A stretch of DNA of 63,836 nt, the filler included, from Octopus bimaculoides (Eukaryota), in assembly GCF_001194135.2 (NCBI RefSeq). It is 6 parts of 5 records of this genome, joined end to end, with 100 filler letters (N's around TTAATTAATTAA, not from the genome) between each part and the next. Parts side by side here need not be neighbours in the genome. Positions count along the whole stretch, not along the records: positions 48,752 to 54,950 come from NW_026365742.1; 5 more parts are not named here. One strand, written 5' to 3'. This document shows, piece after piece, positions 3,510 through 55,051 of the stretch; positions within the stretch are counted from its first letter, which is position 1, and the number at the start of each line of letters is the position of its first letter. The notes under the pieces are model-generated. The model saw only the letters and a program-made list of their open reading frames with translations. It was not told where the DNA came from and did no database searches. Both the position numbers and the translations under genes were made by a program.

Positions 3510-3800
3510 TTATGTGTCCAAGTATTCTTTCAAAATATGACTCACATTCTGCCAGAATACGCGACAAGGTGCACCAAACAAATGAATGGGTGTTTCAAAT
3601 TGGTAACAGACGACAACACCTGAACATTGTGAAAAAACAAAACTCATCTAGTATGGCCATATTCAAAGAAGTATACGTTTGGAAAACATTATCATGGAAG
3701 GAAGGGCAGAGTGCAATAGATGAAGTGGCAGGCAAAGAATGTAGTCGATGGACAATATCGAGAGTTGGCTGGAAAAGAGCGGCAGGGTAACTGAAAACTC
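3510..3800 (+). mobile_element. Decayed RTE-like LINE ORF C-terminus
   Basis: A frame with stops reads YGHIQRS..LENIIMEGRAECNR*SGRQRM*SMDNIESW, resembling the GH..R...ImeG...G.R..GR....W.dni tail of RTE-clade ORFs. Confidence 0.6.
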
Positions 3801-4702: not shown

Positions 4703-5222
4703 CTGTGAAATGTAATGCTAGACTAAGCCACTCTCGAAAAGGCTTGTCAGCGCAGTTGTCAATTTCTCTCCATTTCCTTAATGGTATTTCTTCTGTTAGG
4801 AATGGTTATATGAGTTTCAACAGCAAAGGCCATGATAGAACGACACCTTAAATTCTACAAACCTCAATTACTGATGACAGTTAATCCTTCGCTCGTCATA
4901 TCAGTCTCAATAATCCCTGTTGACGTTATTCAAGGATATTATACCGATGCAACTAAAGGCTTTTCTAATATATGAATCTGAATTCAGTTCAACTAAACAG
5001 AGACATATATGCATATATACATACGCATATGTACATACATCTATACGTATATAATGATGCAACGACTGTTTGTGTATAAAGCTTGAAACACGTGCACCAC
5101 GGAATCCTTTGTGTTCTGTTTTAATTTTACTTTTTTAATTTATTCTTTCACCTCGGCCACTATCTGGCATATACAGGTATTTACAATTATCAAGTATTAC
5201 CTCTAAAATTTGCTTTATATAC

Positions 5223-5226
<4 letters not shown>

Positions 5227-5275
<49 letters not shown>

Positions 5276-5276
5276 C

Positions 5277-5307
<31 letters not shown>

Positions 5308-5315
5308 TGTGTGTG
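5227..5315. repeat. (GT)n microsatellite
   Basis: Directly visible. Confidence 0.95.
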
Positions 5316-5721
5316 GGCACAGGACATCACGAAACGTGTACAGCAAAAAATACGAAGCACGAGTAGATGGAACATGAACTATTCTTTGGAACAACGAAAG
5401 ACACATTTGGAAAACAAAACAAACAACATAAAGAACGACCCTTCATCAGTTGTTGGCTGTTTTTTTTTCTTTTTCCAGTCTCGTATTTCGAGCATACACA
5501 CAAAGAGATATACACGTAGTGCCTTTGAAAGCAGCGTGTTAGTCGGCAAATCGATTCATCAATAAGGTTTCCTCGTCCGTACTTAGGTCAGAACTCCCTT
5601 TGGGACAGGCATCAATACACAACATCTCGTATCCTTGGCTTAGAAATACTGAGATTTGGTCTCGCTCAAATACATTGATTTAACAATTATTGTTGGCTTT
5701 AGCAACAACACAAACGACATT

Positions 5722-5761
<40 letters not shown>

Positions 5762-5762
5762 T

Positions 5763-5806
<44 letters not shown>

Positions 5807-6207
5807 GGTGGTAGTAGTAGCAGCAGTAGTAATACTAATTATTGTTATGGCTGATTTTTTCTTTTACTTCCTCCTGCTGCCCTCTTATCGTTACAACAGC
5901 ATGTGGTTTGTTGTTTGTTATTTTCATTGTTATTGCTACTTCTGCTGCTGCTACTACTGCTGCTACTACTGCTGCTACTTCTGCTACTGCTACTGCTTCT
6001 GCTATTGCTGCTGCTGCTGCTAATTATGATGATAATACTGTTAATCTGCTTTTAATGGTGGCAACAGGGCTTGAGCACTAGTGTATCCCGAGTATTAATG
6101 TTGTCGCTGCAGCTGCTGCTGCTGGTGGTGGTGGTGATGGTGGTGGTGGTGGTGGTGTTAGTGGTGGTAGTGGCGTTAGTGGAGGTGGTGGTGGTGGTGG
6201 TGGTGGC
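5722..6207. repeat. Compound trinucleotide repeats (GTA/GTG, CTA/CTG, GTG)
   Basis: Directly visible; these repeats generate the poly-V, poly-C and poly-T ORFs in the track. Confidence 0.9.
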
Positions 6208-6479
6208 GATGGCGGAGTATTCGACGGGGGTGGGCAGAGTACAATGGTGGAGGGGAATAAGTGCTCCGGTTGTACATATATATTTATTACAGGGTCCATA
6301 ATATAAAATGCTGGCGTTTTTATGTCTGCCGCCAGCAATTAACCGAATTACATCAAACACCACGTGTTTGCGTCTCTCTCTCTCTACGTGGAGAATTTAC
6401 AACAAACGCAAACCTTCGTGAGTATCAACAACCTCATTATGTTTAAAACTTTGTTTCGGGATGCCAATCACTAAAGTTA

Positions 6480-6640
6480 GTCGTGTTCGTCATGTTCTTG
6501 AGCAAATTACATCCTTTCACGTTGATCCCGGCCATTCCAACTGTAAATGAGATTCTACGCGATGGGCTGGCGTCCTGTTCAGGTGGGTTGTTGTGATTTC
6601 GGTCCCTTATTGAAAGCCAAGTAACCGGCCCTATGAATCC
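6480..6640 (+). mobile_element. SINE family A fragment (core + tail type 2)
   Basis: GTTCTTGAGCAA...TTTCACGTTG core followed by GCGATGGGCTGGCGTCCTGTTCAGG, homologous to 39005-39250. Confidence 0.55.
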
Positions 6641-6769
6641 TATCGACGATGTTTTTTATAAACACAGAATATAACGTTAGGCAAGACTAAGAAATCGAAG
6701 GTTTACTGTAGTTGTGAAGTTTTGATCCGCTGGTCTTCAGTTGTTGAATTTCTTTCTAATTATAACACA

Positions 6770-6970
6770 AGGCCAGTAATATTTAGAGTAGAGACATTTC
6801 GATTACATCGACTCTTGTACTTCACTGGTACTTTATTTTATCGACATCGAAAAGATGCAGGTCAAAGTCGGCCTCTGTGGTATTTGAGCTCTAAATATAA
6901 AGTTCGAAGAAATGCCGCAAAGAATTTTATCCGAAACGCTAACTACCCTGCCTGCTGGCTACCTTCTTCA
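6770..6970 (-). mobile_element. Diverged SINE family C
   Basis: CAAAGTCGGCCTCTGTGGTATTTGAGCTC resembles the reverse complement of family C. Confidence 0.6.
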
Positions 6971-7424
6971 GTTATTGAATTAGTATCAGTAAATTCTGAG
7001 AGCTGGTTTCTTCCTTTTATTTTTAATTATGTTTAAACATATATACATAAGCATAATGGCTGAAAATCGATTTTGAATCTTGCCATCCCTGGAGAGTTCT
7101 CTTAAATATTAGCGCCGAGTTGTGTTTTTAAAGTCCTGTTAAGGACTGACCATCTTTTGCAAAGATGTGGCAACGATGACCACCTCTTGCAGCATATATT
7201 CAGAGATCTTACCACCCACACTGACACATGCCTACATACCAACATGGAAGGTAATTGACTCCGAGAAGACAACGTATTATAATTGATCGAAAATATAAGC
7301 AATATAATTCGAAGAGTGTCTGGTTTCCAAATGTAACAGGTGAAAAGAAACGGACATATTTAATATGGCGAACACAACGACTAAAGTATTCTATTCAGAA
7401 ATCTCTCTGATATCGCTGCTTTAC

Positions 7425-7550
7425 CTCTGAATTTAGATTCGAGCAATTTCGCTAATGAATTTGTTATATGCAATACAACGCTACTATTCTCTGTCTCCAT
7501 TTGAGATTGCGACGTCTTTCTTTTGCTGTCATTAAATTCGCTAACGGTAA
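7425..7550 (-). CDS. Candidate internal exon (126 nt, phase 1-1), product unknown
   Basis: TTTAG| acceptor and AGAG|GTAAAG donor around an open frame TVSEFNDSKRKTSQSQMETENSSVVLHITNSLAKLLESKFR. No homology recognised. Confidence 0.35.
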
Positions 7551-8304
7551 CTAAACGGTCAGTGGTGAGTGTCATGTCCAGAATATATCATTATACAATA
7601 CAAATTCTTCTGCACAAAATTAGGTCTCTTCAACAGAAATACCATTCGTTTATCGCAATTAATCGGTATGCAAGGTAATAAAGACAATTTTAGCTGACAT
7701 ATTGATTTTGCATTGAATCGACAAAGAGCATGAATTACAAGAAAGAAATATATTGACCCCAGTATATTATTGATTTCTGTGGGTCTTACACAATACACAG
7801 AATACAATGACCCCTTATTTCAGACTAAATCAAACGGAAACTGTAAATGCGATGGTATTTTTAGGGGCATCAGCTTTATAAGTTGAACGACCTGGTTACT
7901 AAAAAATACTTGGTACTGGCATTCCAAAATCCACCTGCAACATATTCTCCACTTGCATTAGTTTAACGCTCGAGAAGTGACAAAGTCTTTAACGTTTTGA
8001 GCCTAGGCTCTTCCACAGAAAGGAACACAGAAAGACAACGTTTGTTGTCTACACTACCTGTCTTCGTCTTTTGTTTTTTGTTTTTTTTTTGCAAATTCTT
8101 CCTATATATTACACGCTCACGTGGTCGCACCACTTGGTCCTGTCTTCTTTCATTACCCAACGAACTTTTATACCTTCTACGCCGAACTAGTCTACCTGGA
8201 TTCTCTACCTGGACGTTCTACTCTCGTACTCTTCAGCTGCACCTCTCCTGCACATGGATTACACTGGACTCCTAATATATATATATTATATATATATATT
8301 ACTT

Positions 8305-8410
8305 TTCTTTTACTTGTTTCAGTCATTTCATTGCGACCATGCTGGGGCACCGCTTTTAGTCCAGCAAATCGACCACAGGACTTATTCTATCGGTCTCTTT
8401 TTTGAGATCA
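8305..8410 (-). mobile_element. SINE family B 3' module
   Basis: TTTACTTGTTTCAGTCATTTCATTGCGACCATGCTGGGGCACC. Confidence 0.75.
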
Positions 8411-8593
8411 ATGACTTTTCGTCACTGGAAAAAGTATATATATACATATATTTGCGATGGGAACCACTTCACATGGCCAACCGGTTTTTACGTTCTGAAC
8501 TCAAATTCTGCCGAGTACTGGAGTCGATGCAATCGATTTTCCTCCTTCCCCGAATTTACTGGCCTTGTGCCAAAATTTGAAACCATTACTATT

Positions 8594-9021
8594 CTTTTCT
8601 GCTCTAGACACAAAGCCCGAAATTTGGGGGGAGGGGACCAGTCGATTAGATCGACTCCAGTATGCAACTGGTACTTAATTTATCAACCCCGATAGGATGA
8701 AAGTCAAAGTCGACCTCGGCGGAATTTGAACTCAGAATGTAAAGACAGACGAAATACCACTAAGTATTTCGCCCGGCGTGCTACCGTTTCTTATTTCATT
8801 ATTGCCCACAAGGGGCTAAACATAGAGGGGACAAACAAGGACAGACAAAGGGATTAAGTCGATTACATCGACTCCAGTGCCTAACTGGTACTTAATTTAT
8901 CGAACCCCAAAGGATGTAAGGCAAAGTCGACCTCGGCGGAATTTGAGCCCCGGACATAACAGCAGACAAAATACCGCTAAGCATTTCGCCCGCGTGCTAA
9001 CGACTCTGCCATCTCGCCGCC
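8594..9021 (-). mobile_element. Head-to-tail dimer of SINE family C flanked by an 18-bp direct repeat
   Basis: Two minus-strand units. TTTGAAACCATTA(C/T)TATT occurs at 8576-8593 and 9022-9039, the first being the tail of a plus-strand family C fragment at about 8485-8593. Confidence 0.8.
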
Positions 9022-9733
9022 TTTGAAACCATTATTATTATCGTTGTAGCGCTGGTTGCTTTTCCTTCTATTGTGTCTGCTTCAGCAGCCAGCGAAGCTG
9101 AAACGGCTATAAATATAAGCAGGCCTTTATAGAATACATACACCTATTATCTCATTCTTTGCATTTATCTCGTTTTTAATTATTCATATGTAATATTCCA
9201 TTTTCCGTTGTACTTTTCTGTACAGTTCATTGATTTCTAAGTACTTTTAAGGCTGTCTTCGTTCTAAATTCTCTTATCTTTTTCTTCTTTTTTTTTCACC
9301 TGTCTTATCTATTATCTTAATAGTGCTGTTAATTTATTTTCCGGATTTCAAGGTTGCCTTGGCACATTTCTTCTAATCCGAGACTCCCGTAATCTCAACT
9401 AGTAAATGTGCGTTTCCCTGTTGCCGTGATCCCTGTTGCTTCTTCCTTACGAATTCAATTTTAGGGTCGTCCATTTGCAGAAGAAGTCCTCCTATTGATT
9501 TCTGAAGCCGACACCTGTTGCTTGTCTGTCTTTTTCTTCTAATTTCTACTACTATTATTATCATCATCATCATCNNNNNNNNNNNNNNNNNNNNNNNNNN
9601 NNNNNNNNNNNNNNNNNNNNNNNNNNNNNNNNNNNNNNNNNNNNNNNNNNNNNNNNNNNNGGAGGGGGGGAGGAAGAGGAAGAGCAGCAGCAGTAGTGGT
9701 AGTAGCAGCAGCAGCAGTTGTAATAGTAATAGT

Positions 9734-9794
<61 letters not shown>

Positions 9795-9799
9795 TTTTC

Positions 9800-10610
9800 T
9801 TTTGACTCAAGTTCGCTTTCATTGTTGGTACGGATTTATGTGGATAGCAGTTACTACCTGTAACCTTACGTATCCACAAGTTTTCAGCTGTCTTTCAAGT
9901 GCTTAGAACCCTCCTGATAATTCTTGATCTCCTTAAGAGACAAACCTTCTGTAGGATCTCTACCGGTCATTCTATTTCCATCTTCTTCAACCATTTTATC
10001 TATACCTTGGTTTACTGTTCCCAGCGCACTAATTATTATAGGCGCGACCTTTACAGTTCGCATGCTCCAAATTCTAACTACTTCAAATTTTAAAGAGTTG
10101 TGTTTTCTTTGTTTTTCTTCCTCTTTCTTTTCGATCCTGGAAACAAATGGGTATGATGGGTCAATAAGTAAGCAACTTCGCTTTTCTTTACATATGATTG
10201 TAATATCTGATCTATTGCTTTGTAACTTCTTGTCCGTTTGAAGTAGAAAGTCCCACAAAATCGTACATTTCTTCGAATCTTTTCCTCTTTCGACTCCATG
10301 ATAGTACCATCTGTTTCTAGCTTCAAATCTCCATCTCTAGCAAATTTTCCAATGTAAAACATTTATAAATTGGTCGTGCTTCCATTTCTTGTATTCTTCT
10401 TGTGCCAACTTGCGGAATTCTGTCACAATGTGTGTTACTGTCTCGTTCCAAGTTCCACAGGTTCTACATTTTTCTGATACATTCTCTTCATATGTATTTT
10501 TTCTTAAGTTGTTTGTTTTTATTCCTTGATCTTGGGCTGCTACAATTAGGCTCTGTTTCTTTTTTCAAGCCCAGGGTTTTGTTCCCCATACGTCTTCAGT
10601 AGCTGTCCAA
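9800..10610 (-). mobile_element. R4/Dong-like non-LTR retrotransposon 3' part (zinc knuckle + restriction-like endonuclease)
   Basis: VTHIVTEFRKLAQEEYKKWKHD...LHWK followed by WDFLLQTDKKLQSNRSDITIICKEKRSCLLID...PIIISALG. The 3' end abuts a (TAC)n tract. Confidence 0.8.
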
Positions 10611-10644
10611 ATTTGGCCATGCAAAGTATTATTATTTTTACTGA

Positions 10645-10667
10645 TGTTATTATTACTATTATTATTA

Positions 10668-10721
<54 letters not shown>
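10645..10721. repeat. (TTA)n tract at the 3' end of the second R4-like fragment
   Basis: Directly visible. Confidence 0.9.
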
Positions 10722-10722
<1 letters not shown>

Positions 10723-11170
10723 TCAGTAGTCTTATTTATTTTCATTACGTTCTTTCACTGCACTACCGAGTCTAGCTCCGTGTGACTTGAAGAACGTGTG
10801 CGGTACCTAGCAGTGCTATTTTCTGTATGTTATATACATTTTTAAAGTCCTGGTGTTTTGGTTACGTAATTCTCTGAATGTTTTTTTTTATCATACATAA
10901 TGCACCTTACTATGATAGGAATTGTTTCTGTTTTTAGGCTCCACATTCGAGTTACCTCTATTTCCAGAGTTTAATAGTTTCTCCGCTTCCTTTAGAGATA
11001 CATTTTCATCTGTTGGTATTAATACAAAGATCAGAAGGTATTTTTTTCCTCATTGATCCCTAACATCTATGTCCGGTGTATTAGCCTTGATTCTTCTATC
11101 TGTGTGTATTGGCATATAGCAGAGTATGATTGCTTTGTCATTTTTTGTGATCTTTTCTTAAAACAGAAGA
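10722..11170 (-). mobile_element. Second R4/Dong-like 3' fragment (endonuclease C-terminus)
   Basis: Frameshifted ...PTDENVSLKEAEKL...EVTRMWSLKTETIPIIV...IQKIALLGTAHVL, followed by (TAA)n. Confidence 0.7.
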
Positions 11171-11264
11171 CATGATAAGATGCGAAGGTGATCTGTCGGT
11201 TATTTCAAGTAAGGTGAATAAACGTGGCTCCTTCATCGGATCGTATATAGGTAAATTGTTTTAA

Positions 11265-11314
<50 letters not shown>

Positions 11315-11701
11315 CAAGGAAATATTGTAGACGCAGCAAAGGCAGTTGACTAGATTTATAACACACTATCATACATTCGGTTCTTCCAGCTCACCAGCGG
11401 AAACTAAATGCAATTGCAACTAGTAATTGAATCTTCACACACCTTCATATTCGATTAGATTTTTCCGTTTAAAAAAAATGGATTGACAGATATTGTTTCC
11501 CTATCTTTTAATAGAAACATTACCACCAAAATTCTGCCACATGCTGATAACTAATTTATAGAAAAAATACCAGAACGTTCAATAGATTAGTTTAGCAGAA
11601 TCTATATTAAGAATTGGATTTTTTCACTTACGTCCGATCATTCAAATACAACGTGCAACATAAATACGTATATATANNNNNNNNNNNNNNNNNNNNNNNN
11701 N

Positions 11702-11742
<41 letters not shown>

Positions 11743-11745
<3 letters not shown>

Positions 11746-12297
11746 GAGGGGTAGTCAAAAAGTAATGCCATTTTGTGTTTAGGACAGGTATAATTACCAG
11801 CACAGAGGCATGTATCGTGCATCAAAATGAAGCTGGTCCTCTATGGATCACATCCCTACTTCTCAACGTAGTCACCATTTCACTCAATAGCAATTTTCTA
11901 CCTTCGAATGAGAGCATGTATCCTTGCCCCCGAAAATTCTGTTGACTGTTCTTTGAGCCACTTCTTCACTACAGTTTTCACTTCCTCGTCACTGGAATAA
12001 TGTTTGCCTCTCAAACCTTCTTTCATGGGACCGAAGAGATGATAGTCCAGTGACGAGGAAGTGAAAACTGTAGTGAAGAAGTGGCTCAAAGAACAGTCAA
12101 CAGAATTTTACAGGGAAGGGATACATGCTTTTATTCGAAGGTGGAACATTGCTATTGAGAGAAACGGTTACTATGTTGAGAAGTAGGGATGTGATCCACA
12201 GGGGACCAGCTTCATTTTGATGTATGATACATGTTCCTGTGTTGGTAACTATACTTGTCCTAAACAAAATAGCATTACGTTTTGACTCACCCTCGTA
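11743..12297. mobile_element. Palindromic mariner-derived MITE: two inverted 3' ends
   Basis: Termini TACGAGGGGTAGTCAAAAAGTAATGC and GCATTACGTTTTGACTCACCCTCGTA. Arms 11743-11996 and 12046-12297 are reverse complements. The minus strand reads DYHLFGPMKEGLRGKHYSSDEEVK (mariner C-terminus). Confidence 0.9.
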
Positions 12298-12997
12298 TAT
12301 CTGTGTCTGTGAGAAATATATATATAAAAGGAAGGATGCAGAATATATTGAAAATGTGTGTAGATGTGAATTCCTTATACCTTATACCAGTTCTGAGACA
12401 AAAAGATTGTGTCCCAGGAAACTGGTATAATAAGATGAGAAGAAGCAGATAAATTAAGAACAAATGGTCGATAACGATATTTGACATATTAGTTCAGAGG
12501 AGGGGGAAGTCTTGAAGTCTATACAGAAAAGACTACAAGAAAATGCTATAAGTCTCTGTTGTGTTTGGTGAGTGAGGCTTGGCTCATCAGTGAAATTACT
12601 TCTGTATTTTATTTACTTGTTTATTTGAAGTTGCCATTTATATATCATACTAAATGTATGATACATGGTTAGAAGACATAATGCTATAGAGCTGTTGATA
12701 ATGAATATGATTTCATAGATTTGTGTTAAATACACGACACATGCCGGAGCGAGAGTTATTTATCTGAATTTTTAACTTTGAAAAATTTACTTTAAGCTCT
12801 ACCGTTCATAGAAACAAAATAGCTCACCAAAGTATTCTCTTCGGGCAAGAAACTGTTGATAATATGGAAAAAATAGGTACATTCCACTCTGGAATATCAC
12901 TAATGCGTTTGAGACACACGCTGAGTCAAATACACGAGGAGTTATTTTAGACCAGATCTAATTTTGAATAAAGAAAGCAAGTGATCAAATTGAAAAA

Positions 12998-14024
12998 TTA
13001 ATCATCAATGTACCTTCCCTGGTTATATATGACTTCCTTCCATCTATTTACAAACTTTTTAATCCCATCAATGTAAAACTCTTTTGGTTTCAAAGCGAAG
13101 AACTCTGAAATGTCAGTTTCGACCTCCTCCTGGCTTGCGAAAGTTATGTCCCCCAAATATTTCTGTAAACTACGAAACAAATGGTAGTCTGAAGGATCAA
13201 GGAGGGAGAATAAGGTAGATGAGGAATTTTTTCCCAACCAAGCTCTTCGATATTCTGTGATGTGATCTTTGCAGTGTTGGGTCGCGCATTATCCTGATGA
13301 AACATCACTCCTTTTCGATTCACTGAAGCGGGTCTTTTTTTCTTTAAAGCTTGGTTCAAACGCTCTAAATGCTGACAGTAGACTTGAGCATTGATTATTG
13401 CATTAGGTGGTAACAATTCAAAGTGAATTACTCCTTTGTAATCCCACCAGATTGAGAGAAGTACCTTTTTCCCATGAAGTTCCCTACTCGGTTGTGGTTG
13501 AGCTTTTCCCCTTTTACCAAACCACTGTTTACGACATTTAACATTTCGATAGAAGATCCATTTTTCGTCACCAGTCACAAGTCTATCCAAAAACGGTGAA
13601 ATGAGTTCGCGAGAATGGAGAGAAGAGCAGATGTCAACTCGGGATTTGCGGTTGCTTTCGGACAATTCATAAGGCACCCATTTTCCAACTTTAGGAACCT
13701 TTCCAAGTTGTTCAAGATGACGATGAACAGTTGTATAGTTTAAACTAAGCTTTATTGCCAATTCTTCAACTGATAATGCAGGATTTTCTTCAAGTAATGC
13801 CTCAAGGAGTTTATCATCAAACTCAACTGGATGTCCTGTTCGACTTCATCTTCAAGGCTGAAATCTCCACTTCTGAATTTTGCAAACCATCTTCTGCAAG
13901 TCCTTTCATTCAAGCATTCTTTCCCATAAACTGAGTGTATATTTCGAGTCGTTTCGGCTGCAGAGTTTCCTTTTTTATACTCATAAGGCATTATGTGCCT
14001 TAAATGATCTTTGTTTACTTCCAT
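12998..14024 (-). pseudogene. Full-length DD34D mariner transposase, two frameshifts
   Basis: MEVNKDHLRHIM...RRWFAKFRSGDFSLEDE, WVPYEL, TGDEKW, HQDNARP and PYSP..DYHLF. About 342 codons over three frames. Matching TIRs not found. Confidence 0.92.
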
Positions 14025-14207
14025 GTTAGAAAGGGTTTTAATCAAAGAAATTTTAATTCTATTATTCTGTAAAATATATTTAATTAGTTTAAATGTACAC
14101 ACATGCATAAAAATAATTTTTAATTCCATTAGACATTCTAAAATACAATTAGATTTCATTCAATTTTAAAAAAAGGTAAAATCGGACAGAACTAATAGAT
14201 AAATAAT

Positions 14208-15059
14208 TACAGGGTGCCGTGAATAAACTGTCGTTTAAATTACGCAAAAATGAAAATAACACTGACATCTCATTTTAACAGATATATTTACCATAATTAC
14301 ATAAAAATATCTTGAAATACTAAACAGTAAATTTATTCAGTAAAATCGCCATTGACTTCAACCTCGGCCTCCAGAGGGCTTCGGAACCTTCTGCAACTCT
14401 TCTGGACGGACTCCTTGTTTACGTTGGTGAATGCTGCCATAATCCTTGCCTTCAGTTCATCTTTGTTGTTGCAAGGAGTTTTGTCGGTCTTTCGCTCAAC
14501 TGCACCCCACACATAATAATCAAGGGGGTTGCAGTCTGGGGAGTTAGGTGGCCAGATGTTAGGGGTGATGTAGTTGTAAAAATTGTCTGACAGCCACGTC
14601 TGGGTTCTCCTCCTTGTGTAGCATAGTGCAGAACCCTGTTGCTGAAGGTCCAGAACAGCACTACCTCTTCCAGGCACTTGATGTACGCCTCCGTGTTGAG
14701 TATGAGGCCGTGTGGGAAGATGTATGGAGGCATAACGTCGCTATCACTAGTGATCACTCCAAACACCATGATGGTGGTGACTGCATGTTTGATTTTTATC
14801 ACACTCGGTACATGTCCTCAGATTGAAACCCAAACACTCTGAAATGTTCGTATTGGAGCTTCTAGTGCGAATGCCAAGCAGTACAGCCTGTCGTTTCCAA
14901 AAATCTGGCAGAGTGAATTGTGCCATGTTGCTGTTTTTGTTACAGACGGTGCCCAACTGACCCTACCATACTGTGTAGTCGACAAATTCAGAAGCACACA
15001 ATGCGCATGCGCGAAGCTAGAAATATAAAATGGCGACAATTCACCCGTTGTAACCTGTA
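14208..15059 (-). mobile_element. Internally deleted DD37D (maT-like) Tc1/mariner element, copy 1
   Basis: TACAGG termini with TA. QQ[G]SA...WPPNSPDCNPLDYYVW gives 37 residues between the 2nd and 3rd catalytic positions; the 2nd D is mutated to G. Confidence 0.85.
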
Positions 15060-16019
15060 TATAAATTTGGTGTCCACAATTAGAACAGCGTTCAATTTAA
15101 TTCCCCCTCGGTGTATCATGATGCATAACGAACATGTTTGATGTAGTGACTTACGAGATCAACGTAAGCGTTTCGCGTTTGCAGGCATTGACAAGCCTCA
15201 AGGAAGGTGAAATCCGTCTGTCGTTCTCTTGAGTCACTGGAGCGAAGATGTTCGTAACGCTTCGATATATATTGTGTTTTTAACGCAACAAGTTTATAAA
15301 GAGCTTTTTTCTCAAGACAATTCCACGGAATATTGCCGTTTAAAGATGTATATATCTTTAGTCCGATACACAGGTAGATATAATAATTCAATGCTGCTTC
15401 ATTTGCGTGTACTGAGTTTTCCTACAGCCCTGCAAGCCTCTTTAATATCAGTGAATGTTTAATTCACTGTTTCCTTTGGGTATCAAAACACATATTTAGT
15501 GTAAGCAGGTGATAATAAAATGCACTGCATTGAGAAACCTCAGAAAGGCGAAATGCATCTGTCACTTTGGGATGCACTGCACCGACGATGTTGATCTCGT
15601 TCCGATGTATGCTGAGTTTTTAACACATATCTATGAAAATATTTTATTTCAGACACTTCAACAGCATCATACCTTCAAATTGTGTGTAAATGTTTACTAT
15701 GATAAGATTGCGATTTATATTTAATGTTGTTCCAATTGCGTACACCAGATTTATAATTTATTTATTTAGATCTGGCTTAAAATATTTGTCCGTTTATACG
15801 ACTCAATGACTCTAACGCATCAGCAATATTCCAGAGTAAACTGTGCTTATGTGTTGCAGAGTATTAGCACTTTCTTACCTGAAGAGAATAATCTGGTGAA
15901 CGGTTTTTCCTCTAAGAAGGAGGAGAGCTCATGGCCTTTTGTAAAAATGTTCAAAGTTATAAACAAGATAAATGACTTCGATTTGATTTCTGATTATTAT
16001 TCATGATTTATGAGTAACA

Positions 16020-17300
16020 AATGGCAATAAATCGTGAGTAACTTGGGAGTTCAAACCCTGATAGCGATTAAAATTTGAACTCAGGCTTCTTCCGTATGCT
16101 GTCAGGTCCGTCCTCCAATTCGCTATACTTTTTCGAAGCAATCGCTCGACATTCGATGCAATGTCAAATAGGTTCAGACACTCTATAATCTAAGAATGTG
16201 ATATCATATCGTACGCCTTACGATAGTCAATACATGACATGGCTAAGTTATTTGTCCTCCTCTTGCAGTCTCTAAGTATAGTTTTGTCTGTCAGGAGTTG
16301 ATCTTTAGTACCTTTGCACTTACGCTTGCAACCCTTCTGCTCATGTGGCAGGACTCCATTTTTTTTTCAGATGTTCGTACATTGAATCTGCGAGTATTCC
16401 AGCCAGTAACTTCCACATACGTGGCAAAGAGGATATCGGCTTGTAATTGTCTACCGTATTGCCTTTTTCGATGTTCACTGTCCTACCCAGTGTCAACCAC
16501 TCTGGTGTTACTTGGTCGGCATTTAACAAGGTGTTGAGTTGTGCAGCTATTCGTGCATGATATTCACCAAATCTTTTAATCCAGTAATCTTGAACTCCAT
16601 CTGGTCCCGGGGCCTTCTAATTGCTAATCTTTTTGTTAATTTCCTTCACTTCCCTGACTGAAATAACTAGTTCTGCCTGTTTTGGACAGACTACTGTTTG
16701 TTTCAGTTCTTGCAACCATTCAGCATCCTTCTTGTGCTCCTTGTCTTTGCTCCAGATGTCACTCCAAAACCGTTGACTTTCATTGTTATCTGGTATCAAC
16801 TTTTCATCTGTACACTCTCCATGTATTTCTTTATAGAATCTCTTCTGATCTACACTGAATAACCTATTCTGGTAGAAACCCTTCATTTTTTGGCCGTATC
16901 TTATCATCTTTGCTTTCTTTGCAACGAGACGCTGTTTCAGTTCCTCCATTACCAGTTTCAGGCCCTTTCTTTCAATATCATACTTCCTGTTCAGCGCCCT
17001 GTATTTTTGTTCACTTTTAAGCTCCCCTTTCTCTTTTCGCTCTAACACGGAGATTTCCTTCGCAAGCATGTCTAACCCTGCCTGGATTCTTCTTTTCCAC
17101 CATGGATCTTTTCTTTTGTCACTCCCATTATAATTCTTTTTCTTGACATCACGTTTTCTGCTACAACAATACTTGCTGCTTTGATCAAATTATTTGTTTC
17201 TGTGATGTTGTTTGTTCTGATGTATTTCAAAATTTCATTTTCATTTTTCGTTTCTTGGTTCAATTTCCATCGACCAACCTTTTTAAGTTTGCAAATAATG
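16020..17300 (-). mobile_element. R4/Dong-like non-LTR retrotransposon, N-terminal and RT region
   Basis: QNRLFSVDQKRFY, FWSDIWS, KAPGPDG, YKPISSLPRMWKLL, EQKGC..GTKDQLL and IDYRKAYD, with frameshifts. Confidence 0.85.
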
Positions 17301-18059
17301 TCACCCTAGGTGCCTTACTGTAGGACTGAACCCGGAACCATGATGTTGAAAAACAATCTGCTTACCATACACCCACGCCTGCACCTAAATTAAATTATAT
17401 AAATTTTCTTTTAATTTATTCTGCTCATTACAGTGTACTTTCTATTATTCAAATACGACCATAAAATGTCGTCTATTCATTGTGGAACGCATTTTCTCTC
17501 TATAAATAAGAAAACAACTCGCCAATGTTCGATAAATATTGGTTTTGCACTTAAATGCTTTGTCTTTTACCGATTCCATTATCAGATAATAAAGAATTAC
17601 GTGTTTTGTCCTTTTCCTTCTACAGAAGTCTAATCACGACGGAAGCAAACGAACGTATCCCTATATGACAGACTAAGAAGAGAGTTGCTATCAGAGCAAG
17701 CAACATACTAGAAATAATAGCCAGATTATCTCTAAGGCATTCATTGTCGTTCAAGAACGCATTAAATCAGTTGTTCTCAAACTTTTTAATATTTAGGCGA
17801 GACCCAAAACCTGGATTTCTTTTAGGAAGCCGCAACAAAATAGTTTAACATAAGTGAATTAAAGAAAAGACTTATTTTTTATGGGGGGAATACCACCGAG
17901 GGCCACTGGATGGATGCTTGAGGACCGCATGAAGACCTGGGAGCAGTGGTTGTGAATCGCTCCACAAGGCAGGGTGGTCGCGACTAGAATGTAAGTTGAA
18001 TCAGGTTTGATCAACGGATAAATAGCAATACGATAGAGTGTGGGAACTTCTATATGGTC

Positions 18060-18262
18060 GCATGACTTTCTAGAAATAGCAGTTAATTTAACCCCCCGAA
18101 TTACAAACAATATTCATGAATTATGACAAGAAGAAAATCAGATAATGTAGAATGTCGTACATGAAAGTTGATTTAAAAACAAAGACGAGTTGGTCACGAC
18201 TGGGACGCTTTTGAAATAGGTCTGCTCGGTCAGGTCTAGACCCGGGTGAAACAACAAGTATA
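18060..18262 (+). mobile_element. Family D dispersed repeat 3' end with (AAC)n tail
   Basis: GGTCACGACTGGGACGC...AGGTCTGCTCGGTCAGG...GAAACAACAA is the reverse complement of the units at 59790-60390. Confidence 0.6.
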
Positions 18263-18294
18263 ACAATAACAAAAGACTACAATATCTATATATC

Positions 18295-18590
18295 TACGGG
18301 CATATGGCATAGTGGTTAAGAGCGCGGGATACTACCCCAAGATTCCGAGTTCGATTCCAAGCAGTGACCTGAACAATAATAATTATAATAATAATAATAA
18401 TAATAATAACATCGAAAAATACCTTAGGAATGAGAACCCAGATTCGAAATTTCCCCAAGACACCTGATGAAGGTTGGAGGGTATACCAGCCGAAACGTTG
18501 TGTTAACAACAAACAAGATGAGGACAAATATCCGTCAAATGTAAATAATGTAAATAATGTACATAATTCCTCATCTCTTAAATATAGAAC
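18295..18590 (+). mobile_element. tRNA-headed element with (AAT)n spacer and Penelope-like 3' part
   Basis: A box TGGCATAGTGG, B box GAGTTCGATTCC and (AAT)n, then CCTGATGAAGG...CCGAAACGTTGTG. Confidence 0.7.
18459..18504 (+). ncRNA. Minimal type I hammerhead ribozyme motif (Penelope-type)
   Basis: GACAC-CTGATGA-A-GGTTGG/loop/CCAGCC-GAAA-CG-TT-GTGTT. Stem I pairs GACAC/GTGTT, stem II is 6 bp, stem III is the palindromic ACGT, and the cleavage triplet is GUU. Confidence 0.65.
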
Positions 18591-18724
18591 TGTGTTACAA
18601 TATATAATAATTATGCAGATTGATGAAAGCCGCTTATTGTGATAATTTAGTGATGATACCCTTTCGATAACAATAAACAGCTGATAACATTAAGCAGATT
18701 ATATAAACGTATTGAATTCTTTTT

Positions 18725-18976
18725 TTTACTTCTTTCAGTCATTGGACTCCAGCCATACTGGGGCAACGTCTTGAAGCGTTTTGTCAATCAAATTCAGCCC
18801 AGTACTNNNNNNNNNNNNNNNNNNNNNNNNNNNNNNNNNNNNNNNNNNNNNNNNNNNNNNNNNNNNNNNNNNNNNNNNNNNNNNNNNNNNNNNNNNNNNN
18901 NNNNNNNNNNNNNNNNNNNNNNNNNNNNNNNNNNNNNNNNNNNNNNNNNNNNNNNNNNNNNNNNNNNNNNNNNNNN

Positions 18977-19008
<32 letters not shown>

Positions 19009-19065
19009 ACGGGCTTCTTTCAGTTTCCGTCTGCCAAATCCACACACAAGTCTTACCACACAACC
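18725..19065 (-). mobile_element. SINE family B spanning a gap
   Basis: 3' module at 18725-18806 and head part at 19007-19065. Confidence 0.7.
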
Positions 19066-19561
19066 ACACCTGCACCTATGATCAGTTAAAATATGTGACA
19101 GAGTTCATGTTATAGTTCTAAATGTAAAAGAGAGTGAACACAGAGAGGCGAATGAAATCACACGTTAAAGACGCTATGTCGCAATGAATGAAAGTTATTT
19201 TTCTATAGTTGACATCTTTCATATTAAAAGAAACTTGAAAGTACATTTTGATATAACAAAAAATATATCAAAATTAGGATTTTTAAGAAGTTTCTAAACA
19301 TTGTAGACATTAATAAATACTTTCTTCTAATAAAGTTACATGCATATAACAAAATGATAAGCAGTTTTATTTATTATAGTATAGATTTCCTACATTAACA
19401 ATATCAACATGAGGAACAAAGCTTAGAATTCTGAGATCAAAATTCGGTCACAACGTTTCGCTAATCTCCAACAGCGAAATGCTTTTGAGTTCAAAATATT
19501 GGCTAGTGTTCAATACGTTGGCTGATGTTCTGGTTTTTAATAGGAGTTTGGATTTCATTAC

Positions 19562-48453: not shown

Positions 48454-48769
48454 TATTACACACAAGCTGTTTGTGATTTCTTTTCCTTCTTTGGACTATT
48501 GCCTTTCACTTTTCTGACAAAGAGGTATACTTAAACCATCAAAAACTCTCTCTTTTCACTGAGAGTCAAACTAATACATTCCTTGTGCATGTCTTCTGGT
48601 TGTCTGTTATTGTTGTTAATTTTCTTTTACTTGAATTGACTATATATATATNNNNNNNNNNNNNNNNNNNNNNNNNNNNNNNNNNNNNNNNNNNNTTAAT
48701 TAATTAANNNNNNNNNNNNNNNNNNNNNNNNNNNNNNNNNNNNNNNNNNNNTATATATATATATATATA

Positions 48770-49620
48770 TATATGGTTGTGTGTGCGGATATAGGCAGGC
48801 ATATTAAGACCATTCTGGACTCAATAATTCCCCAGATTAAGCCTCACATTCCGCTCAACATATGGGTTAACACTGATGACGTTTCAAGTTGGTTCAACTC
48901 TATTACTTGTAGGAACAATTGCCCATTTATACAATTCGACATATCGAATTACTACTCAAGAATTTCTTCAATTTTATTGAATAAGTCCCTAATATATGCT
49001 CGTAACCTTTCACTTATAGCTAGAGAAAAAAAAATTGGCATCATGCTCTTAGCTAGGAAGACAATAATTGAATTCGAGGGTAAGCTTTGGACTAGGTCGG
49101 ATACCCCTGATAACTTCCATGTGGCCATGGGCTCGAGCGATGCAGCTCAGGTGACTGACGTAGTCAAGGCCTTTCTAGTTAAGAGGCTATTCTCGGAGGT
49201 ACCAGGCCTTCAGGGGGGTCTATACAGAGATGACACCCTCTTCATATACCCCACCAATAGCAAAAGTACTTTAGAAAGAATTAGAAAAAAAGATTAAACA
49301 TTTTTTAAATCATTTAATCTGAAACTTCAATTCATGACCAACAAGATAGTTGATTTCTTAGATGCTACATTAGACATAGATAAAGGCCTTCACTACTCTT
49401 ATAGAAAGCCAGAAGAAACCACAAGTTATATTGGCACATTATCTAATCACCCGCCCTGTATAATTAATACCACAGCCCAGCTGTTTCCGATAGACTAAGT
49501 TATCCTCAAACGAAAATATTTTTAGTGATCACGCTCATCATTATAATCAAGCTCTCTCTAACGCTGGGTACTCCCAGAAGCTATCTTTTGTTAAAAACTT
49601 AAATGATAAACCACCCAAAG
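48770..49620 (+). mobile_element. Second, distinct Penelope-like element RT (possibly Naiad-type)
   Basis: FIQFDISNYYSRI, FHVAMGSSDAAQVTDVV and GGLYRDDTL, then after a frameshift VDFLDATLD...YRKP...SNHPPCII. Confidence 0.75.
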
Positions 49621-50274
49621 CATCCATCATTAGTTAACAATCTGTTATTACATCAGATATTCACTCTCTCGATCGCAACATTCTTCTGTATATCTCACTT
49701 AAGTCTAGTATGTTTCATCCTGGCCTCCTGAAACAATTTCACTCCATTCCACACTTTTGTTCGCCATCCAGTTCGATCCGAAACAAGGCCTTTGGATCCA
49801 TTTCAAGTCGCTTCATGGTAATCCTTATGACATCCTTAAAACTCTTCGTTTACACCAATTGCGTTTCTCCTCAGCAAGCTGGCCATAAGACAGATGCTTG
49901 TGTATGCGTTCAGCTGCCATTCGAACAATATGGCCAAACTATCTCATTTGGTTTCTTTTCAAAATCATTGATTTAAATGAGGAGATGCCTGCTGACGCAA
50001 AGATATTTGCCTCTGGAATGAAAAAGTCCCATTAAATGCTTACAATGCAGCGAAGGCTTGTTTGGTGGAATCATTTTATCAGTGTGAAATGTCTTTTGCA
50101 ACACGTCCAAGTTCCAAAAGAATACAACAGTGATGGTAAGACCACCGATTTGTAAAGGGCCAATATTGTGTTATTTATATGTCGTCGACACCAAACGCGT
50201 GACTCCAAAGCACCAAATGCTTCTGCTGCACTTTGTATTCGCAGATGTATTTCTATTTACCAGATTACCATTCT

Positions 50275-50750
50275 TTTGTTGATTTAAACCAGTCATTCGA
50301 TACTGTTAGTCGAAATGCTCTGTGGCTACGTCTAATGGAAATAGGTGGGCCAGAAAAATTTGTGAATATGATCGTAGCTTTGCTTTAAGATATGAAGGCT
50401 AGCGTTAATGTTGGTGGTAGGCTTTGTGAATATTTCGCTGTGAAATATGGGGTAAAGCAAGGGGAGCTTGATACAACCATCGTCTTTGCAATATAATTTG
50501 CTGTTGGGACGTCACACGCTTTGCAAAACGCCGACGAGGGGATTTAAATAAAATCTCGAACAACAGGTAACGTTTTTAATCTGACCAGACTGATATTCAA
50601 GACAAAGGTTTTCCCTCCACTCAGTAGGGAACACTTATACGCTGACGATTGTGATCTAGTCAGTCACTCAGAAATGGGCCTTCAGTCTCTTGTTTCTGCA
50701 TTGCACACAGTTTGTGATGATATTCGCTTGAGCATCAAGTTAAAAAAAGA
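50275..50750 (+). mobile_element. RTE (BovB-like) LINE RT fragment
   Basis: FVDLNQSFDTVSRNALW, GVKQG, GNVFNLTRL and LYADDCDLV, with in-frame stops. Confidence 0.88.
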
Positions 50751-50850
50751 ACAAAAAGAAAAACAGTTGTAACGTTTCAAACTGCAAGTAGTGCTGTTTG
50801 CAATCCCACCGAAAGTCTTTGTTAAAGATGCTACTTGAGGTCGTTGACAC

Positions 50851-50898
<48 letters not shown>

Positions 50899-51399
50899 NN
50901 NNNNNNNNNNNNNNNNNNNNNNNNNNNNNNNNNNNNNNNNNNNNNNNNNNNNNNNNNNNNNNNNNNNNNNNNNNNNNNNNNNNNNNNNNNNNNNNNNNNN
51001 NNNNNNNNNNNNNNNNNNNNNNNNNNNNNNNNNNNNNNNNNNNNNNNNNNNNNNNNNNNNNNNNNNNNNNNNNNNNNNNNNNNNNNNNNNNNNNNNNNNN
51101 NNNNNNNNNNNNNNNNNNNNNNNNNNNNNNNNNNNNNNNNNNNNNNNNNNNNNNNNNNNNNNNNNNNNNNNNNNNNNNNNNNNNNNNNNNNNNNNNNNNN
51201 NNNNNNNNNNNNNNNNNNNNNNNNNNNNNNNNNNNNNNNNNNNNNNNNNNNNNNNNNNNNNNNNNNNNNNNNNNNNNNNNNNNNNNNNNNNNNNNNNNNN
51301 NNNNNNNNNNNNNNNNNNNNNNNNNNNNNNNNNNNNNNNNNNNNNNNNNNNNNNNNNNNNNNNNNNNNNNNNNNNATATATGCGCGTGCCTGTGTCTGT

Positions 51400-51605
51400 T
51401 TGATTATGTCTGTGTTTGTCACACGATCACCTCTTCATAACCGGTGTTGGAGTGTTTGCATCCCCGTATCTATGCGGTTAGTTAAAAAAGATTAATAGAA
51501 TAAGAACCGGGCTTAAAAAAACAACTGGGGTTCATCCATTTCACTAAAATTCTTTAAGGCGGTGCCCCAGCATGGTCGAAGTCTAATGACTGAAACAGGT
51601 AAATA
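51400..51605 (+). mobile_element. SINE family B 3' module
   Basis: GGCGGTGCCCCAGCATGGTCGAAGTCTAATGACTGAAAC. Confidence 0.75.
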
Positions 51606-51698
51606 AGGTAAGCAAGATACAATAACTATTTAAATGTGTTTAACCTTTCATCTGTAATAAAGCAGGTTCTATTATATCAGGAAACAAACAACACTGAC

Positions 51699-51882
51699 CT
51701 ATGAAATCGATCTTGTTACATAAGTTTCCGATGCAACAAGCAACACAGGAAGAGCCATTTGTCAATTTATTGCATTTATAGACATTGTTTCTCATAGCAT
51801 AAAGACATTTTCTGTATGTGCGGCAGGATTTTTCAGATTTCATTTTAACGCCATCCCTTGATAATTTGGTGTGGCACACAAG
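51699..51882 (-). CDS. Exon encoding the C-terminal part of a Ly6/uPAR (LU, three-finger-like) domain
   Basis: TTACAG| acceptor (phase 0) and ATAG|GTCAGT donor (phase 1). Reads LVCHTKLSRDGVKMKSEKSCRTYRKCLYAMRNNVYKCNKLTNGSSCVACCIGNLCNKIDFI, with the hallmark CC-x4-CN. Confidence 0.82.
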
Positions 51883-52982
51883 CTGTAACAGTAAACCCAG
51901 AAATCATATATTACTACGACAACAGCACAGGAGATACTGAAGATGGAAAACTATGAGTCATTGCTCTTAAAATTATCAAAAGACAACAAAGGAAATGTTG
52001 AAAGATGACTGCATAAGTTATTCCCTGTAAATTTTATTTATACTTAATGCATTTAAAGGATGTTTATAAATGCCCTGAATATGTAACGTTCTCATATCAC
52101 GTGTCAATATGGTCATCAAAAGCACATAAACACATGATCGTGCATAAACACGCACACACATGTACACACACGCACGCACACACACACACACATTGAGAGG
52201 AAATGACAAATAATTATAATTCTGTATAATTCGGTCAGAACTTCTTACTCGGGGGAAAGTACATTGAATCCTCTGTGCAAAATGTATGAACAGTCACGAT
52301 TTCAAACACCAGCAACAACAGAAATGAACACACCGGTACCCTTCGTAAAAGATGATNNNNNNNNNNNNNNNNNNNNNNNNNNNNNNNNNNNNNNNNNNNN
52401 NNNNNNNNNNNNNNNNNNNNNNNNNNNNNNNNNNNNNNNNNNNNNNNNNNNNNNNNNNNNNNNNNNNNNNNNNNNNNNNNNNNNNNNNNNNNNNNNNNNN
52501 NNNNNNNNNNNNNNNNNNNNNNNNNNNNNNNNNNNNNNNNNNNNNNNNNNNNNNNNNNNNNNNNNNNNNNNNNNNNNNNNNNNNNNNNNNNNNNNNNNNN
52601 NNNNNNNNNNNNNNNNNNNNNNNNNNNNNNNNNNNNNNNNNNNNNNNNNNNNNNNNNNNNNNNNNNNNNNNNNNNNNNNNNNNNNNNNNNNNNNNNNNNN
52701 NNNNNNNNNNNNAAACAGCCCTTTGGCTAGAAAGTTTCGAAACATGCCTGTGGAATACCAAATTTCATGTAAACATCTCTGACGTTCTAGCGTTAGACCA
52801 AAGCCATCTTTTGAATTTCCCTATTCCTTTAAGAAACTTTATTTTTACCAGCAAAAATTGTATGTTGTTGACGTCATAAGAATTTATAAACTCCAAGAAA
52901 ACATAAAATAATTATTTCTTTGCAGGCCAACAACAATAGTAATAACAATAATGATAATAATAATAATAACGATGGCACGATA

Positions 52983-53020
<38 letters not shown>

Positions 53021-54179
53021 TTCTTTTATTTGCCACCGCGTAACAACATGAGGGCGATGATACAAAAATAGACATAAAATGTCGGAATTTACAAGTATAA
53101 AATGATGAGAAAAAATATAGAAATTATACATACTATACAATAAGTAGAAAGGAAGTACGAGTATATAGTATACGACAGAAAAAATATGGTAATGATGTGG
53201 CCGTTTTGATATAGGAGGACCTCTAGGAAGAATCTAGGGACCCCACCGTTCAAGATCTTCCTGAACACCAAGAGCATGTGTCTTCGTTAATTCGTCTCCG
53301 ACTCACGGTCCTAAGAATGATTTCGATGTTTTTGTAGATTCTTCGTTCAGTTACTCTTATACAACCTTGTCTCATCTTTAAAATGCAGCCCTAAATTTCC
53401 CTTGTAAATATCGGCACATCCATAAGGAAGGTTCCAGAAGCCAGGAGAAATTGAACCGTCCTGTACCTGTTATGACATACAAAACCACTAGCCTGAGGAT
53501 ACCCACTTCACAGTAGGCAGCTGTTACTTTCAGACCAAGTTTTTGCAACATCCAGAAATGGTGGTGTCCAAGAGAACTGCCCATACTTTGAAATTTAAGA
53601 ATTTCCAGGATAATTCTGTTACACAATCGTTCAAATAGAAAATACTACGAGATAAGAATATCTCAATTCACCCAAGTTGGGAGTGAATGTATGCAGTTCA
53701 GAGATATTGATCCTGCTGATGTCTACCATTACTAATCTGGTTCAGCTCGTAGAACAGCGGAACTTACTTCCAGGTTGACTGAGGACAAGTTCTTCATACA
53801 TGTCACTCTAAGTACAGCCAAGTTTATTGGAGAAAGAGAAAGGAAGAGGCCACAATTAAGCTCGTGAGTTCGATTCCTTGACCGAGTGGCACCTTGTGTT
53901 CTTGAACAAGGCACTTAATTTTACGTTGCTCCAGTCTACTCAGCTAAACTGTGTAACCAGCCTATTGACGGTAACCTTTCTCTCCCTTCAAATCTGTAAT
54001 CATTGTTGTTCTGTTAAGGCAATAATCTAGCGGATGTCTGCATCTGCTTACGACTACATAGGCACCGAAAACAATTAGCAAATGCATGTTACAAATGCAT
54101 GATACTTGGTTATATTGGGTTTAGGTGAGGGTTATGAGTATATTGAAACAAAAAGGAAGAAAGGAACATTTCAATTTAC

Positions 54180-54271
54180 CTCATCGCCTGTACAGTTTGT
54201 CACTTCTGGTTCATTGCACATCATCCCTGAACATGTTTGACACTGCAAATTCCGTTGAAATAACGAGTAAT
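54180..54271 (-). CDS. Exon encoding the N-terminal part of the same LU domain
   Basis: TTGTATAG| acceptor (phase 1) and GAG|GTAAAT donor (phase 0). Reads YSLFQRNLQCQTCSGMMCNEPEVTNCTGDE, with the L-x-C-x2-C start motif. Confidence 0.8.
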
Positions 54272-55051
54272 CTATACAATACAATAAAATATCCATATTT
54301 AGGGACCGAATATGTAATGTATAAGAATAAGAGCAAATAATCACTTTATGGTGTAAAGCAAATATAAAAGTTTTAATGTTGGAATCAATACACATAAAGC
54401 ATTTAAACTAAATTGCTAATGAAGACTACGATAGCATGTTACGACTTTCACTTGCAATTGTTTCAGTTTTGTCACAAATTAAACTAAGAAAACTACGATA
54501 GCTACTTGATGGTCTTTTCTCTTTGTATTCTGCTCTCACAAAAAAGCTAAAATTGTGGCATAGCTTAAATAAAGGGAGATAATTCTAAAGTGGTGATGAT
54601 GCTTTTGTAGAATGAACTCCTCTATAAAATCTGTGCATGTCATTTGAATTTTGTAAAAATGTGTAAGGATATGATAACTATTGATTTAATGAGGAAACCT
54701 CTATGTCGTGACTCGACCTACTCAAATAGTAGCCAAAGCACATACATTATTTTCAAGACAGAAAGGCCACACTATAATATATAATCTTCGAAAAACTCAG
54801 TCTAATACTGAATAGTCAGAGCTGGAATGACTATGATACATGAACTCAGCAAAACATATTTGAATAAGCAATAGAAAACAATATCACTCAAATGTTTTTT
54901 CAATCAAACATATATATGTGGTGGGGTTATGTGTGTGTATATACGTATATNNNNNNNNNNNNNNNNNNNNNNNNNNNNNNNNNNNNNNNNNNNNTTAATT
55001 AATTAANNNNNNNNNNNNNNNNNNNNNNNNNNNNNNNNNNNNNNNNNNNNC

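Follow-up and report, generated by a model that had tools for sequence, protein, structure and literature searches.

The window analysed here is a stretch of 63,836 nucleotides (filler included) from Octopus bimaculoides (NCBI RefSeq assembly GCF_001194135.2), composed of six parts of five genome records. Its positions 48752-54950, a 6.2-kb piece from NW_026365742.1, contain two exons on the minus strand that are predicted to encode one Ly6/uPAR (LU, three-finger) domain of the six-disulfide Lynx2/LYPD1 type. This LU domain probably represents an internal, exon-shuffled (phase 1-1) module in the extracellular region of an octopus adhesion G protein-coupled receptor (GPCR), and the gene is likely a member of the octopus expansion of ADGRG-like adhesion GPCRs that bear leucine-rich repeats (LRRs). 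The flanking exons lie outside the 6.2-kb piece, and the receptor membership of the window copy is therefore drawn from homologous loci, principally L001 and L002 from O. sinensis and L003, an O. bimaculoides scaffold.

Exon structure of the LU module

LU exon a (54180-54271, minus strand) encodes (x)YSLFQRNLQCQTCSGMMCNEPEVTNCTGDE and is entered in phase 1 and left in phase 0. It contributes the N-terminal strand, loop I with its extra disulfide, and cysteines 1-4. LU exon b (51699-51882, minus strand) encodes LVCHTK...CCIGNLCNKIDFI(G), is entered in phase 0 and left in phase 1, and contributes loops II and III, cysteines 5-12 and the CCxxxxCN end. The splice sites are on the same strand: the acceptor AG of exon a is at 54272-54273 behind a T-rich tract (upstream sequence ...TTGTATAG), its donor GT at 54178-54179 (GTAAAT), the acceptor AG of exon b at 51883-51884 (CTGTTACAG), and the donor GT of exon b at 51697-51698 (GTCAGT). 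Joined in frame 2, the exons yield the stop-free product YSLFQRNLQCQTCSGMMCNEPEVTNCTGDELVCHTKLSRDGVKMKSEKSCRTYRKCLYAMRNNVYKCNKLTNGSSCVACCIGNLCNKIDFI, whose 12 cysteines are spaced C-x2-C-x4-C-x7-C-x6-C-x16-C-x5-C-x10-C-x8-C-x2-CC-x4-CN. The phase is 0 at the inner junction and 1 at each outer one. An earlier note on this DNA, made from the sequence alone, had proposed these exons with canonical AG/GT sites, an in-frame join, a phase 1-1 module and this cysteine spacing, all of which were reproduced on the minus strand.

The splice junctions were conserved in all three homologous loci, with 4/4 at identical codon positions in L001, L002, and L003, where the counterparts of exon a are at 14153-14242, 5835-5924, and 2808-2897, respectively. 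The acceptor context of exon a, TGTATTGTATAG, has the same letters in L001 and L003. More than 15 relatives use the donor after 'DFIG' and continue with WTNSFVFHLIF...; reading through this donor yields GQCCLFPDIIEPALLQMKG*, with a stop after 20 codons in both the window and L003. A protein search with the spliced peptide returned octopus proteins at E=7e-32 and 1e-30. Judged from these sequences, the two-exon match is not a chance pattern. We rejected an alternative acceptor for exon a (TTTGCAG|TG at 54243/54242) that would remove YSLFQRNLQ, since relatives, the mRNA-derived P0022 among them, conserve these residues.

Besides an assembly gap, the intron that separates the exons (51885-54177, minus strand) contains dispersed repeats, a (GAT)n run, and simple repeats of AT-rich and AC-rich kinds. 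Since the gap (52357-52712, 356 N) falls within the intron, the reading frame across it is irrelevant, and it is the order and orientation of the flanks that count. The intron is collinear with L003 2898-4737 at 79-89% nucleotide identity, and also with L001. On either side of the gap, window 52999-52713 corresponds to L003 3660-3927 and window 52356-51949 to L003 4186-4579 in the same orientation, with ~259 bp in L003 in place of the 356 N. The gap flanks are collinear with O. sinensis L001 as well.

Domain identity and predicted fold

Searched as a single sequence against the PDB with phmmer, the spliced peptide had LYPD1 (6zss) as its top match at E=0.064, with 12/12 cysteines aligned. With a profile of 23 family domains, the match to LYPD1 (human Lynx2) reached E=4.3e-6; next came SLURP-1, LYPD6, three-finger toxins, and ectodomains of activin/TGF-beta receptors (including ACVR1) at E-values of 0.02-0.8. 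Nine of the cysteine columns in these 23 domains are invariant and three are at least 90% conserved. Pfam matches below threshold among the 23 relatives were to Toxin_TOLIP (7), Activin_recp (7), UPAR_LY6_2 (4), and CD59 (3). An AlphaFold2 (AF2) run with a 3-sequence alignment was unusable (predicted local distance difference test, pLDDT, of 42) and was replaced by one with the 23-sequence alignment, which gave a pLDDT of 77.9 and a predicted template modelling score (pTM) of 0.69. In the resulting model, loop II forms a hairpin and residues 53-68 a helix, as in Lynx2. Foldseek searches of the PDB with this model placed Lynx2 first (template modelling scores 0.65/0.68, 3.1 Å), and the best 50 matches listed were only LU domains, snake three-finger toxins, and TGF-beta/activin/BMP receptor complexes. 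All Foldseek E-values were at least 0.015, and values above 0.01 are expected for so small a domain.

The 12-cysteine Ly6/three-finger domain of the earlier note is thus borne out by the family profile, the AF2 model and Foldseek. That note had also set a three-finger fold against an activin-receptor type, and here the prediction favours LU proteins, with Lynx2 first, over activin-receptor ectodomains. Alignment to Lynx2 suggests the disulfides C10-C33, C13-C18, C26-C50, C56-C79, C67-C76, and C80-C85 (peptide numbering). Lynx2/LYPD1, LYPD6, and LYPD6B share a six-disulfide framework of four core bonds plus one each in loops I and III (PMC7582953), so the extra cysteine pair that had been taken as a departure from the classic LU domain belongs to a known framework. 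The basic central loop singled out in the same note is not conserved among relatives.

The likeness to Lynx2 (6zss) includes this framework, the helix after loop II, and a spacing from the fifth cysteine to the end that is identical in both (x16, x5, x10, x8, x2, CC, x4, CN). The two differ in that sequence identity is ~28% and loop I is shorter in the octopus domain (x4 vs x8). Furthermore, Lynx2 is a single-domain, GPI-anchored (glycosylphosphatidylinositol-anchored) protein encoded by a 3-exon gene, whereas in the homologous loci the octopus domain is flanked by exons for other domains. The division of an LU domain over two exons is usual for Ly6 genes (PMC4839075).

Homologous loci and projection onto the window

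L003 shares 85-89% nucleotide identity with the window, introns included, and 79% amino acid identity; the O. bimaculoides protein P0048 is likewise 79% identical to the spliced peptide. Its exons lie on one strand in the order LRR (1538-1597), LRR C-terminal cap (LRRCT; 1866-2033), LU-a, LU-b, SEA-a (7083-7178), HormR (14518-14673), and GAIN (15618-19140). L001, at ~80% nucleotide identity to the window, has the same order of LRR/LRRCT, LU-a, LU-b, HormR, and GAIN, also on one strand. An LRRCT-like exon was found upstream of LU in L001, L002, and L003. In L003 it is 775 bp upstream of LU-a and, by the collinearity of this locus with the window, the LRRCT-like exon of the window copy should lie ~110-280 bp beyond 54950. 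After LU-b, the next exon is 2.2 kb downstream in L003 and the next detectable one 5.2 kb downstream in L001.

With this layout in L003 and L001, the presence of only the two LU exons in the 6.2-kb piece is expected. No further family exons were found there with tblastn using 36-48 relatives, nor did a hidden Markov model (HMM) built on the SEA-like region match anything in six-frame pieces, and tblastn found no LRRCT exon within it.

The existing gene models are split in both loci, at 10001-17571 and 22658-27571 in L001 and at 1887-14031 and 14068-19287 in L003. In each case a short 'LYPD1-like/uncharacterized' LU model comes first and a HormR/GAIN model follows downstream. It appears that one receptor gene has been cut into two models in both reference octopus assemblies. 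The description of the domain as hidden holds only in part. NCBI already has gene models for its counterparts in O. sinensis and O. bimaculoides, of which one bears the name 'ly6/PLAUR domain-containing protein 1-like'.

Receptor family carrying the module

A word-indexed protein search found only 2-3 relatives, and it was an exhaustive HMMER scan, with an alignment of the window peptide and two O. sinensis models as query, that revealed the family. The scan returned 35 relatives. Long proteins of up to 1322 aa, with the module mid-protein, make up the majority. Pfam identified N-terminal LRR_8 repeats, GPS, 7tm_2, and a weak HRM in the long relatives, and reported no domain over their LU stretch. 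The family order is a signal peptide, LRRNT and LRRs, an LRRCT-like cap, LU, an optional SEA-like region, HormR, GAIN/GPS, the seven-transmembrane (7TM) part, and sometimes a Death domain. The 50 residues given as the N-terminus of the short NCBI models (MMCGCHLPA…C…C) come directly after the last LRR in the long relatives, with the four-cysteine pattern of an LRR C-terminal cap. The region after LU spans ~100 residues and is weakly SEA-like: Pfam SEA matches 2/12 members, and its top PDB profile matches were the ADGRF1 SEA region and the SEA domain 1ivz.

LU modules of the family share 51-79% amino acid identity with that of the window. P0010, a model truncated within the 7TM part and without a GPS match at E<=0.001, contains LRR_8 and 7tm_2, and its LU is ~68-70% identical to the window's (via the near-identical P0008 domain). 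The GAIN and 7TM part of P0017 was closest to ADGRG2 (E about 1e-68) and ADGRG6 (about 1e-65). Members in O. bimaculoides, O. vulgaris, O. sinensis, and Argonauta carry the database names adhesion GPCR G6-like, A3, and GPR126-like, while fragments have names taken from their LRRs (decorin-like, slit-like, chaoptin). Family genes are clustered on the same contigs. L004, a 4.2-kb Logan contig, contains an uninterrupted 1155-aa open reading frame (ORF) with LRR, LU, GPS, and 7TM, and thus represents a spliced mRNA. At least one relative therefore transcribes the module and splices it in this form. The 12-cysteine module was also found in more distant members from Argonauta, the gastropod Nucella (full LRR-LU-GPS-7TM), scallop, and sea cucumber.

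An octopus-specific expansion of adhesion GPCRs ('group 3') has been described with LRR and Death domains, co-localized genes, positive selection, and expression found in the axial nerve cord, suckers, and skin (Ritschard 2019, PMC6408891). The family found here likewise has LRR, GPS, 7tm_2, and an occasional Death domain, with exon boundaries in common with the window LU, and its octopus relatives fit what the passages on this expansion describe. They differ in the extra domains listed, which in those passages are LRR and Death alone, with LU unmentioned (PMC6408891).

Individual members vary in several ways. P0020 (O. bimaculoides, 1283 aa) is a family adhesion GPCR whose cytoplasmic C-terminus carries a Death domain (Pfam, 27.6 bits) and fits the single Death-domain member noted in the group 3 passages of Ritschard 2019 (PMC6408891). 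In the O. sinensis proteins P0002 and P0019 the third cysteine, the loop-I partner, is replaced by glycine, and the LU of P0018 lacks the eighth cysteine, leaving an odd cysteine number in each; these copies may be paralogues that are degenerating or have diverged in function. In P0005 (O. vulgaris, 195 aa), a complete LU domain comes after a second-half LU exon, which represents either a local LU-exon duplication or an assembly/annotation artefact. P0036 (Holothuria leucospilota, 837 aa, 'Apple domain-containing') contains four 12-cysteine LU domains with Thr-rich, mucin-like linkers between them and is the sole relative with LU domains above Pfam thresholds (CD59, Toxin_TOLIP).

Comparison with known receptors and LU proteins

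The membrane-proximal part of the family (SEA-like, HormR, GAIN, 7TM) resembles vertebrate ADGRG6 (GPR126) and ADGRG2. N-terminal LRRs followed by LRRCT are the arrangement of the ADGRA type (ADGRA2/3, GPR124/125), and the neighbouring gene has a weak match to PF26588. At the place corresponding to LU, ADGRG6 has CUB-PTX and ADGRA an Ig domain. The LU modules of PLAUR are phase 1-1. As in uPAR (PLAUR), CD177, and C4.4A, LU is used here as a shuffled module with one exon pair per LU (PMC4839075), but those proteins consist of LU repeats only and are GPI-anchored, whereas the octopus family has a single LU among LRR, SEA, and GAIN domains.

The closest precedent in architecture comes from starfish, in which LyAr2 (XP_033635706) and XP_033635539.1 are GPCR-like proteins with one N-terminal extracellular LU and Lynx2 as the closest human relative; a pronounced LU domain is absent from the homologous human GPCR (PMC11595613). 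By their published description, the starfish proteins have the same kind of architecture and LU subtype as the octopus family and differ in being echinoderm proteins. Our literature searches found this starfish precedent and no description of an LU domain in octopus adhesion GPCRs.

Alternative readings of the window copy

Several observations weigh against placing the window exons in a functional adhesion GPCR. Pfam had no match to the window's spliced peptide at E<=10. The LRR/LRRCT, SEA, HormR, GAIN, and 7TM exons all lie outside the 6.2-kb piece, L003 homology of the window stops at 50711 where repeat-derived sequence starts, and expression of the window copy is presumed. Models P0001, P0002, P0048, and P0006 end soon after LU, and LU-terminal isoforms are possible. 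Finally, exon identity between the window and L003 is 89.4% against 79-89% for introns, and the ratio of nonsynonymous to synonymous substitution rates (dN/dS) is 0.75. With this ratio and an exon identity barely above that of introns, constraint on the window copy is not demonstrated. The dN/dS was 0.59 between the window and L001 and 0.27 between the window and L002, a more distant paralogue.

The short models could be taken at face value, in which case the exons would belong to a small, stand-alone protein of the Ly6/Lynx kind (signal peptide, one LU, and a GPI anchor, or secreted) that modulates nicotinic or chemotactile receptors or acts as a salivary toxin. NCBI counterpart models of 151-179 aa exist (P0001, P0002 'LYPD1-like', and P0048), the nearest solved structure is Lynx2, a modulator of the nicotinic acetylcholine receptor (nAChR), and typical Ly6 genes likewise divide LU over two exons (PMC4839075). 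However, the start of the short models (MMCGCHLPA...) is not a signal peptide and corresponds to the middle of the LRRCT-like cap in the long relatives and in L001/L003. tblastn matches extend upstream of the annotated ATG of these models, and the HormR/GAIN exons downstream, on the same strand, have been given a gene annotation of their own. The in-frame ATG at 54395 of the window was rejected as a start codon since it is not conserved, being ACG in L003 with stops interrupting in L001 and L002. A GPI signal typically shares an exon with the second LU half (PMC4839075), but here that half ends at a conserved phase-1 donor. The read-through tail was rejected as a GPI signal, being short and charged with no GPI-type hydrophobic tail. 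None of the 35 HMMER relatives is a stand-alone octopus LU protein. A protein of this kind is therefore very improbable, and the free Lynx1/Sleepless-like or salivary toxin-like role on which the earlier note had speculated runs counter to the LRRCT-like cap upstream and the receptor domains downstream in relatives. That note also assumed signal-peptide and GPI exons, and neither a signal peptide nor a GPI signal was found, nor a start codon that is conserved.

Two other readings keep the LRRs but lose the receptor, or lose the function. Isoforms X1-X3 of a 'decorin-like' protein (P0006, O. bimaculoides, 424-458 aa) have a signal peptide, LRRs, and the LRRCT-like cap before an LU that shares 70% identity with the window domain, and stop ~50 residues later. 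The models 'Chaoptin X4' (P0007) and 'slit-like' (P0004) also have no 7TM part, and in the window, as in L003, exon-b read-through reaches a stop after 20 codons. These would fit a secreted LRR and LU protein without 7TM, either a truncated paralogue or an isoform ending soon after the LU exons. Yet many such models are partial or split predictions, as the HormR/GAIN continuation in L001 and L003 illustrates, and members across the family conserve and use the donor that follows DFIG, which leaves the secreted protein an unlikely reading. We assign a rather low probability also to a decaying or orphaned duplicate, in which the two exons of a recently duplicated receptor gene look intact but stand outside any functional transcript. 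Its support comes from the dN/dS of 0.75 with the closest copy, an exon identity similar to that of introns, and the loss of L003 collinearity 1 kb downstream at a repeat insertion, together with tandem expansion of the family, its many fragmentary models, and the single-cysteine losses in P0002, P0019, and P0018. On the other hand, the copy keeps its 12 cysteines, an open frame, and four intact splice sites, dN/dS falls to 0.27 with L002, and intronic repeat insertions are ordinary. An LU module within an adhesion GPCR remains the reading we favour.

Flanking introns and repeats

The 3' part of the upstream intron occupies 54274-54950 (minus strand), and window 54794-53404 corresponds to L003 2297-3658 at 85% nucleotide identity. 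Downstream intron sequence (48752-51696, minus strand) contains a second gap, a (TA)21 run, and a repeat-derived ORF. The gap (50899-51375) corresponds to L003 5212-5422, and since this stretch of L003 has no exon, an exon within the gap is unlikely. Microsatellites include (TA)21 at 50856-50898, abutting the second gap, (GAT)13 at 52979-53018, and an AC-rich decamer run at 52148-52191. The 174-aa ORF (48773-49297, plus strand) has motifs that look reverse-transcriptase-like by eye (F.QFDI..YYS.I and YRDD) and no Pfam match. It is 64% identical at the nucleotide level to L001 946-1554 and thus part of a dispersed repeat. In L002 (VCDQ01007639.1), positions 6952-7406 contain four tandem copies, ~141 bp apart, of the acceptor region and the first 11 LU-b codons (QPVCQYRLSMN); these are intronic and lie upstream of the real exon at 7655.

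Function and significance

By analogy with other adhesion GPCRs, we infer a binding and activation mechanism for the window receptor in which LU and the LRR solenoid would form its distal surface for ligand binding or adhesion. Once bound at the LRR-LU end, a partner in the matrix or on another cell would exert force on the GAIN domain, and this pull would expose the tethered agonist and switch on the 7TM part. The fast-evolving LU loops may tune partner specificity among the tandemly expanded paralogues. A far more speculative idea, which we regard as a long shot, is that LU in the octopus-expanded adhesion GPCRs acts as a tethered 'prototoxin' contacting Cys-loop receptors (nicotinic or nAChR-derived chemotactile) in cis or trans. 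If true, it would couple ionotropic chemotactile sensing physically to G-protein signalling.

The value of the finding is mainly in annotation and evolutionary context, and the domain is no new kind of molecule. LU modules in octopus genomes escape Pfam/InterPro-type scans, and gene predictors split the receptor genes into fragments named 'LYPD1-like', 'decorin-like', 'slit-like', or 'chaoptin'. Counts of cephalopod Ly6/Lynx prototoxins would therefore be misled by such names. The relatives in a gastropod, scallop, and sea cucumber, together with the published starfish LU-GPCRs, suggest that the LU-in-adhesion-GPCR architecture is old in bilaterians. For octopuses, the module would add a defined, fast-evolving binding domain to an octopus-specific adhesion-GPCR expansion linked to the suckers and the arm nerve cord.

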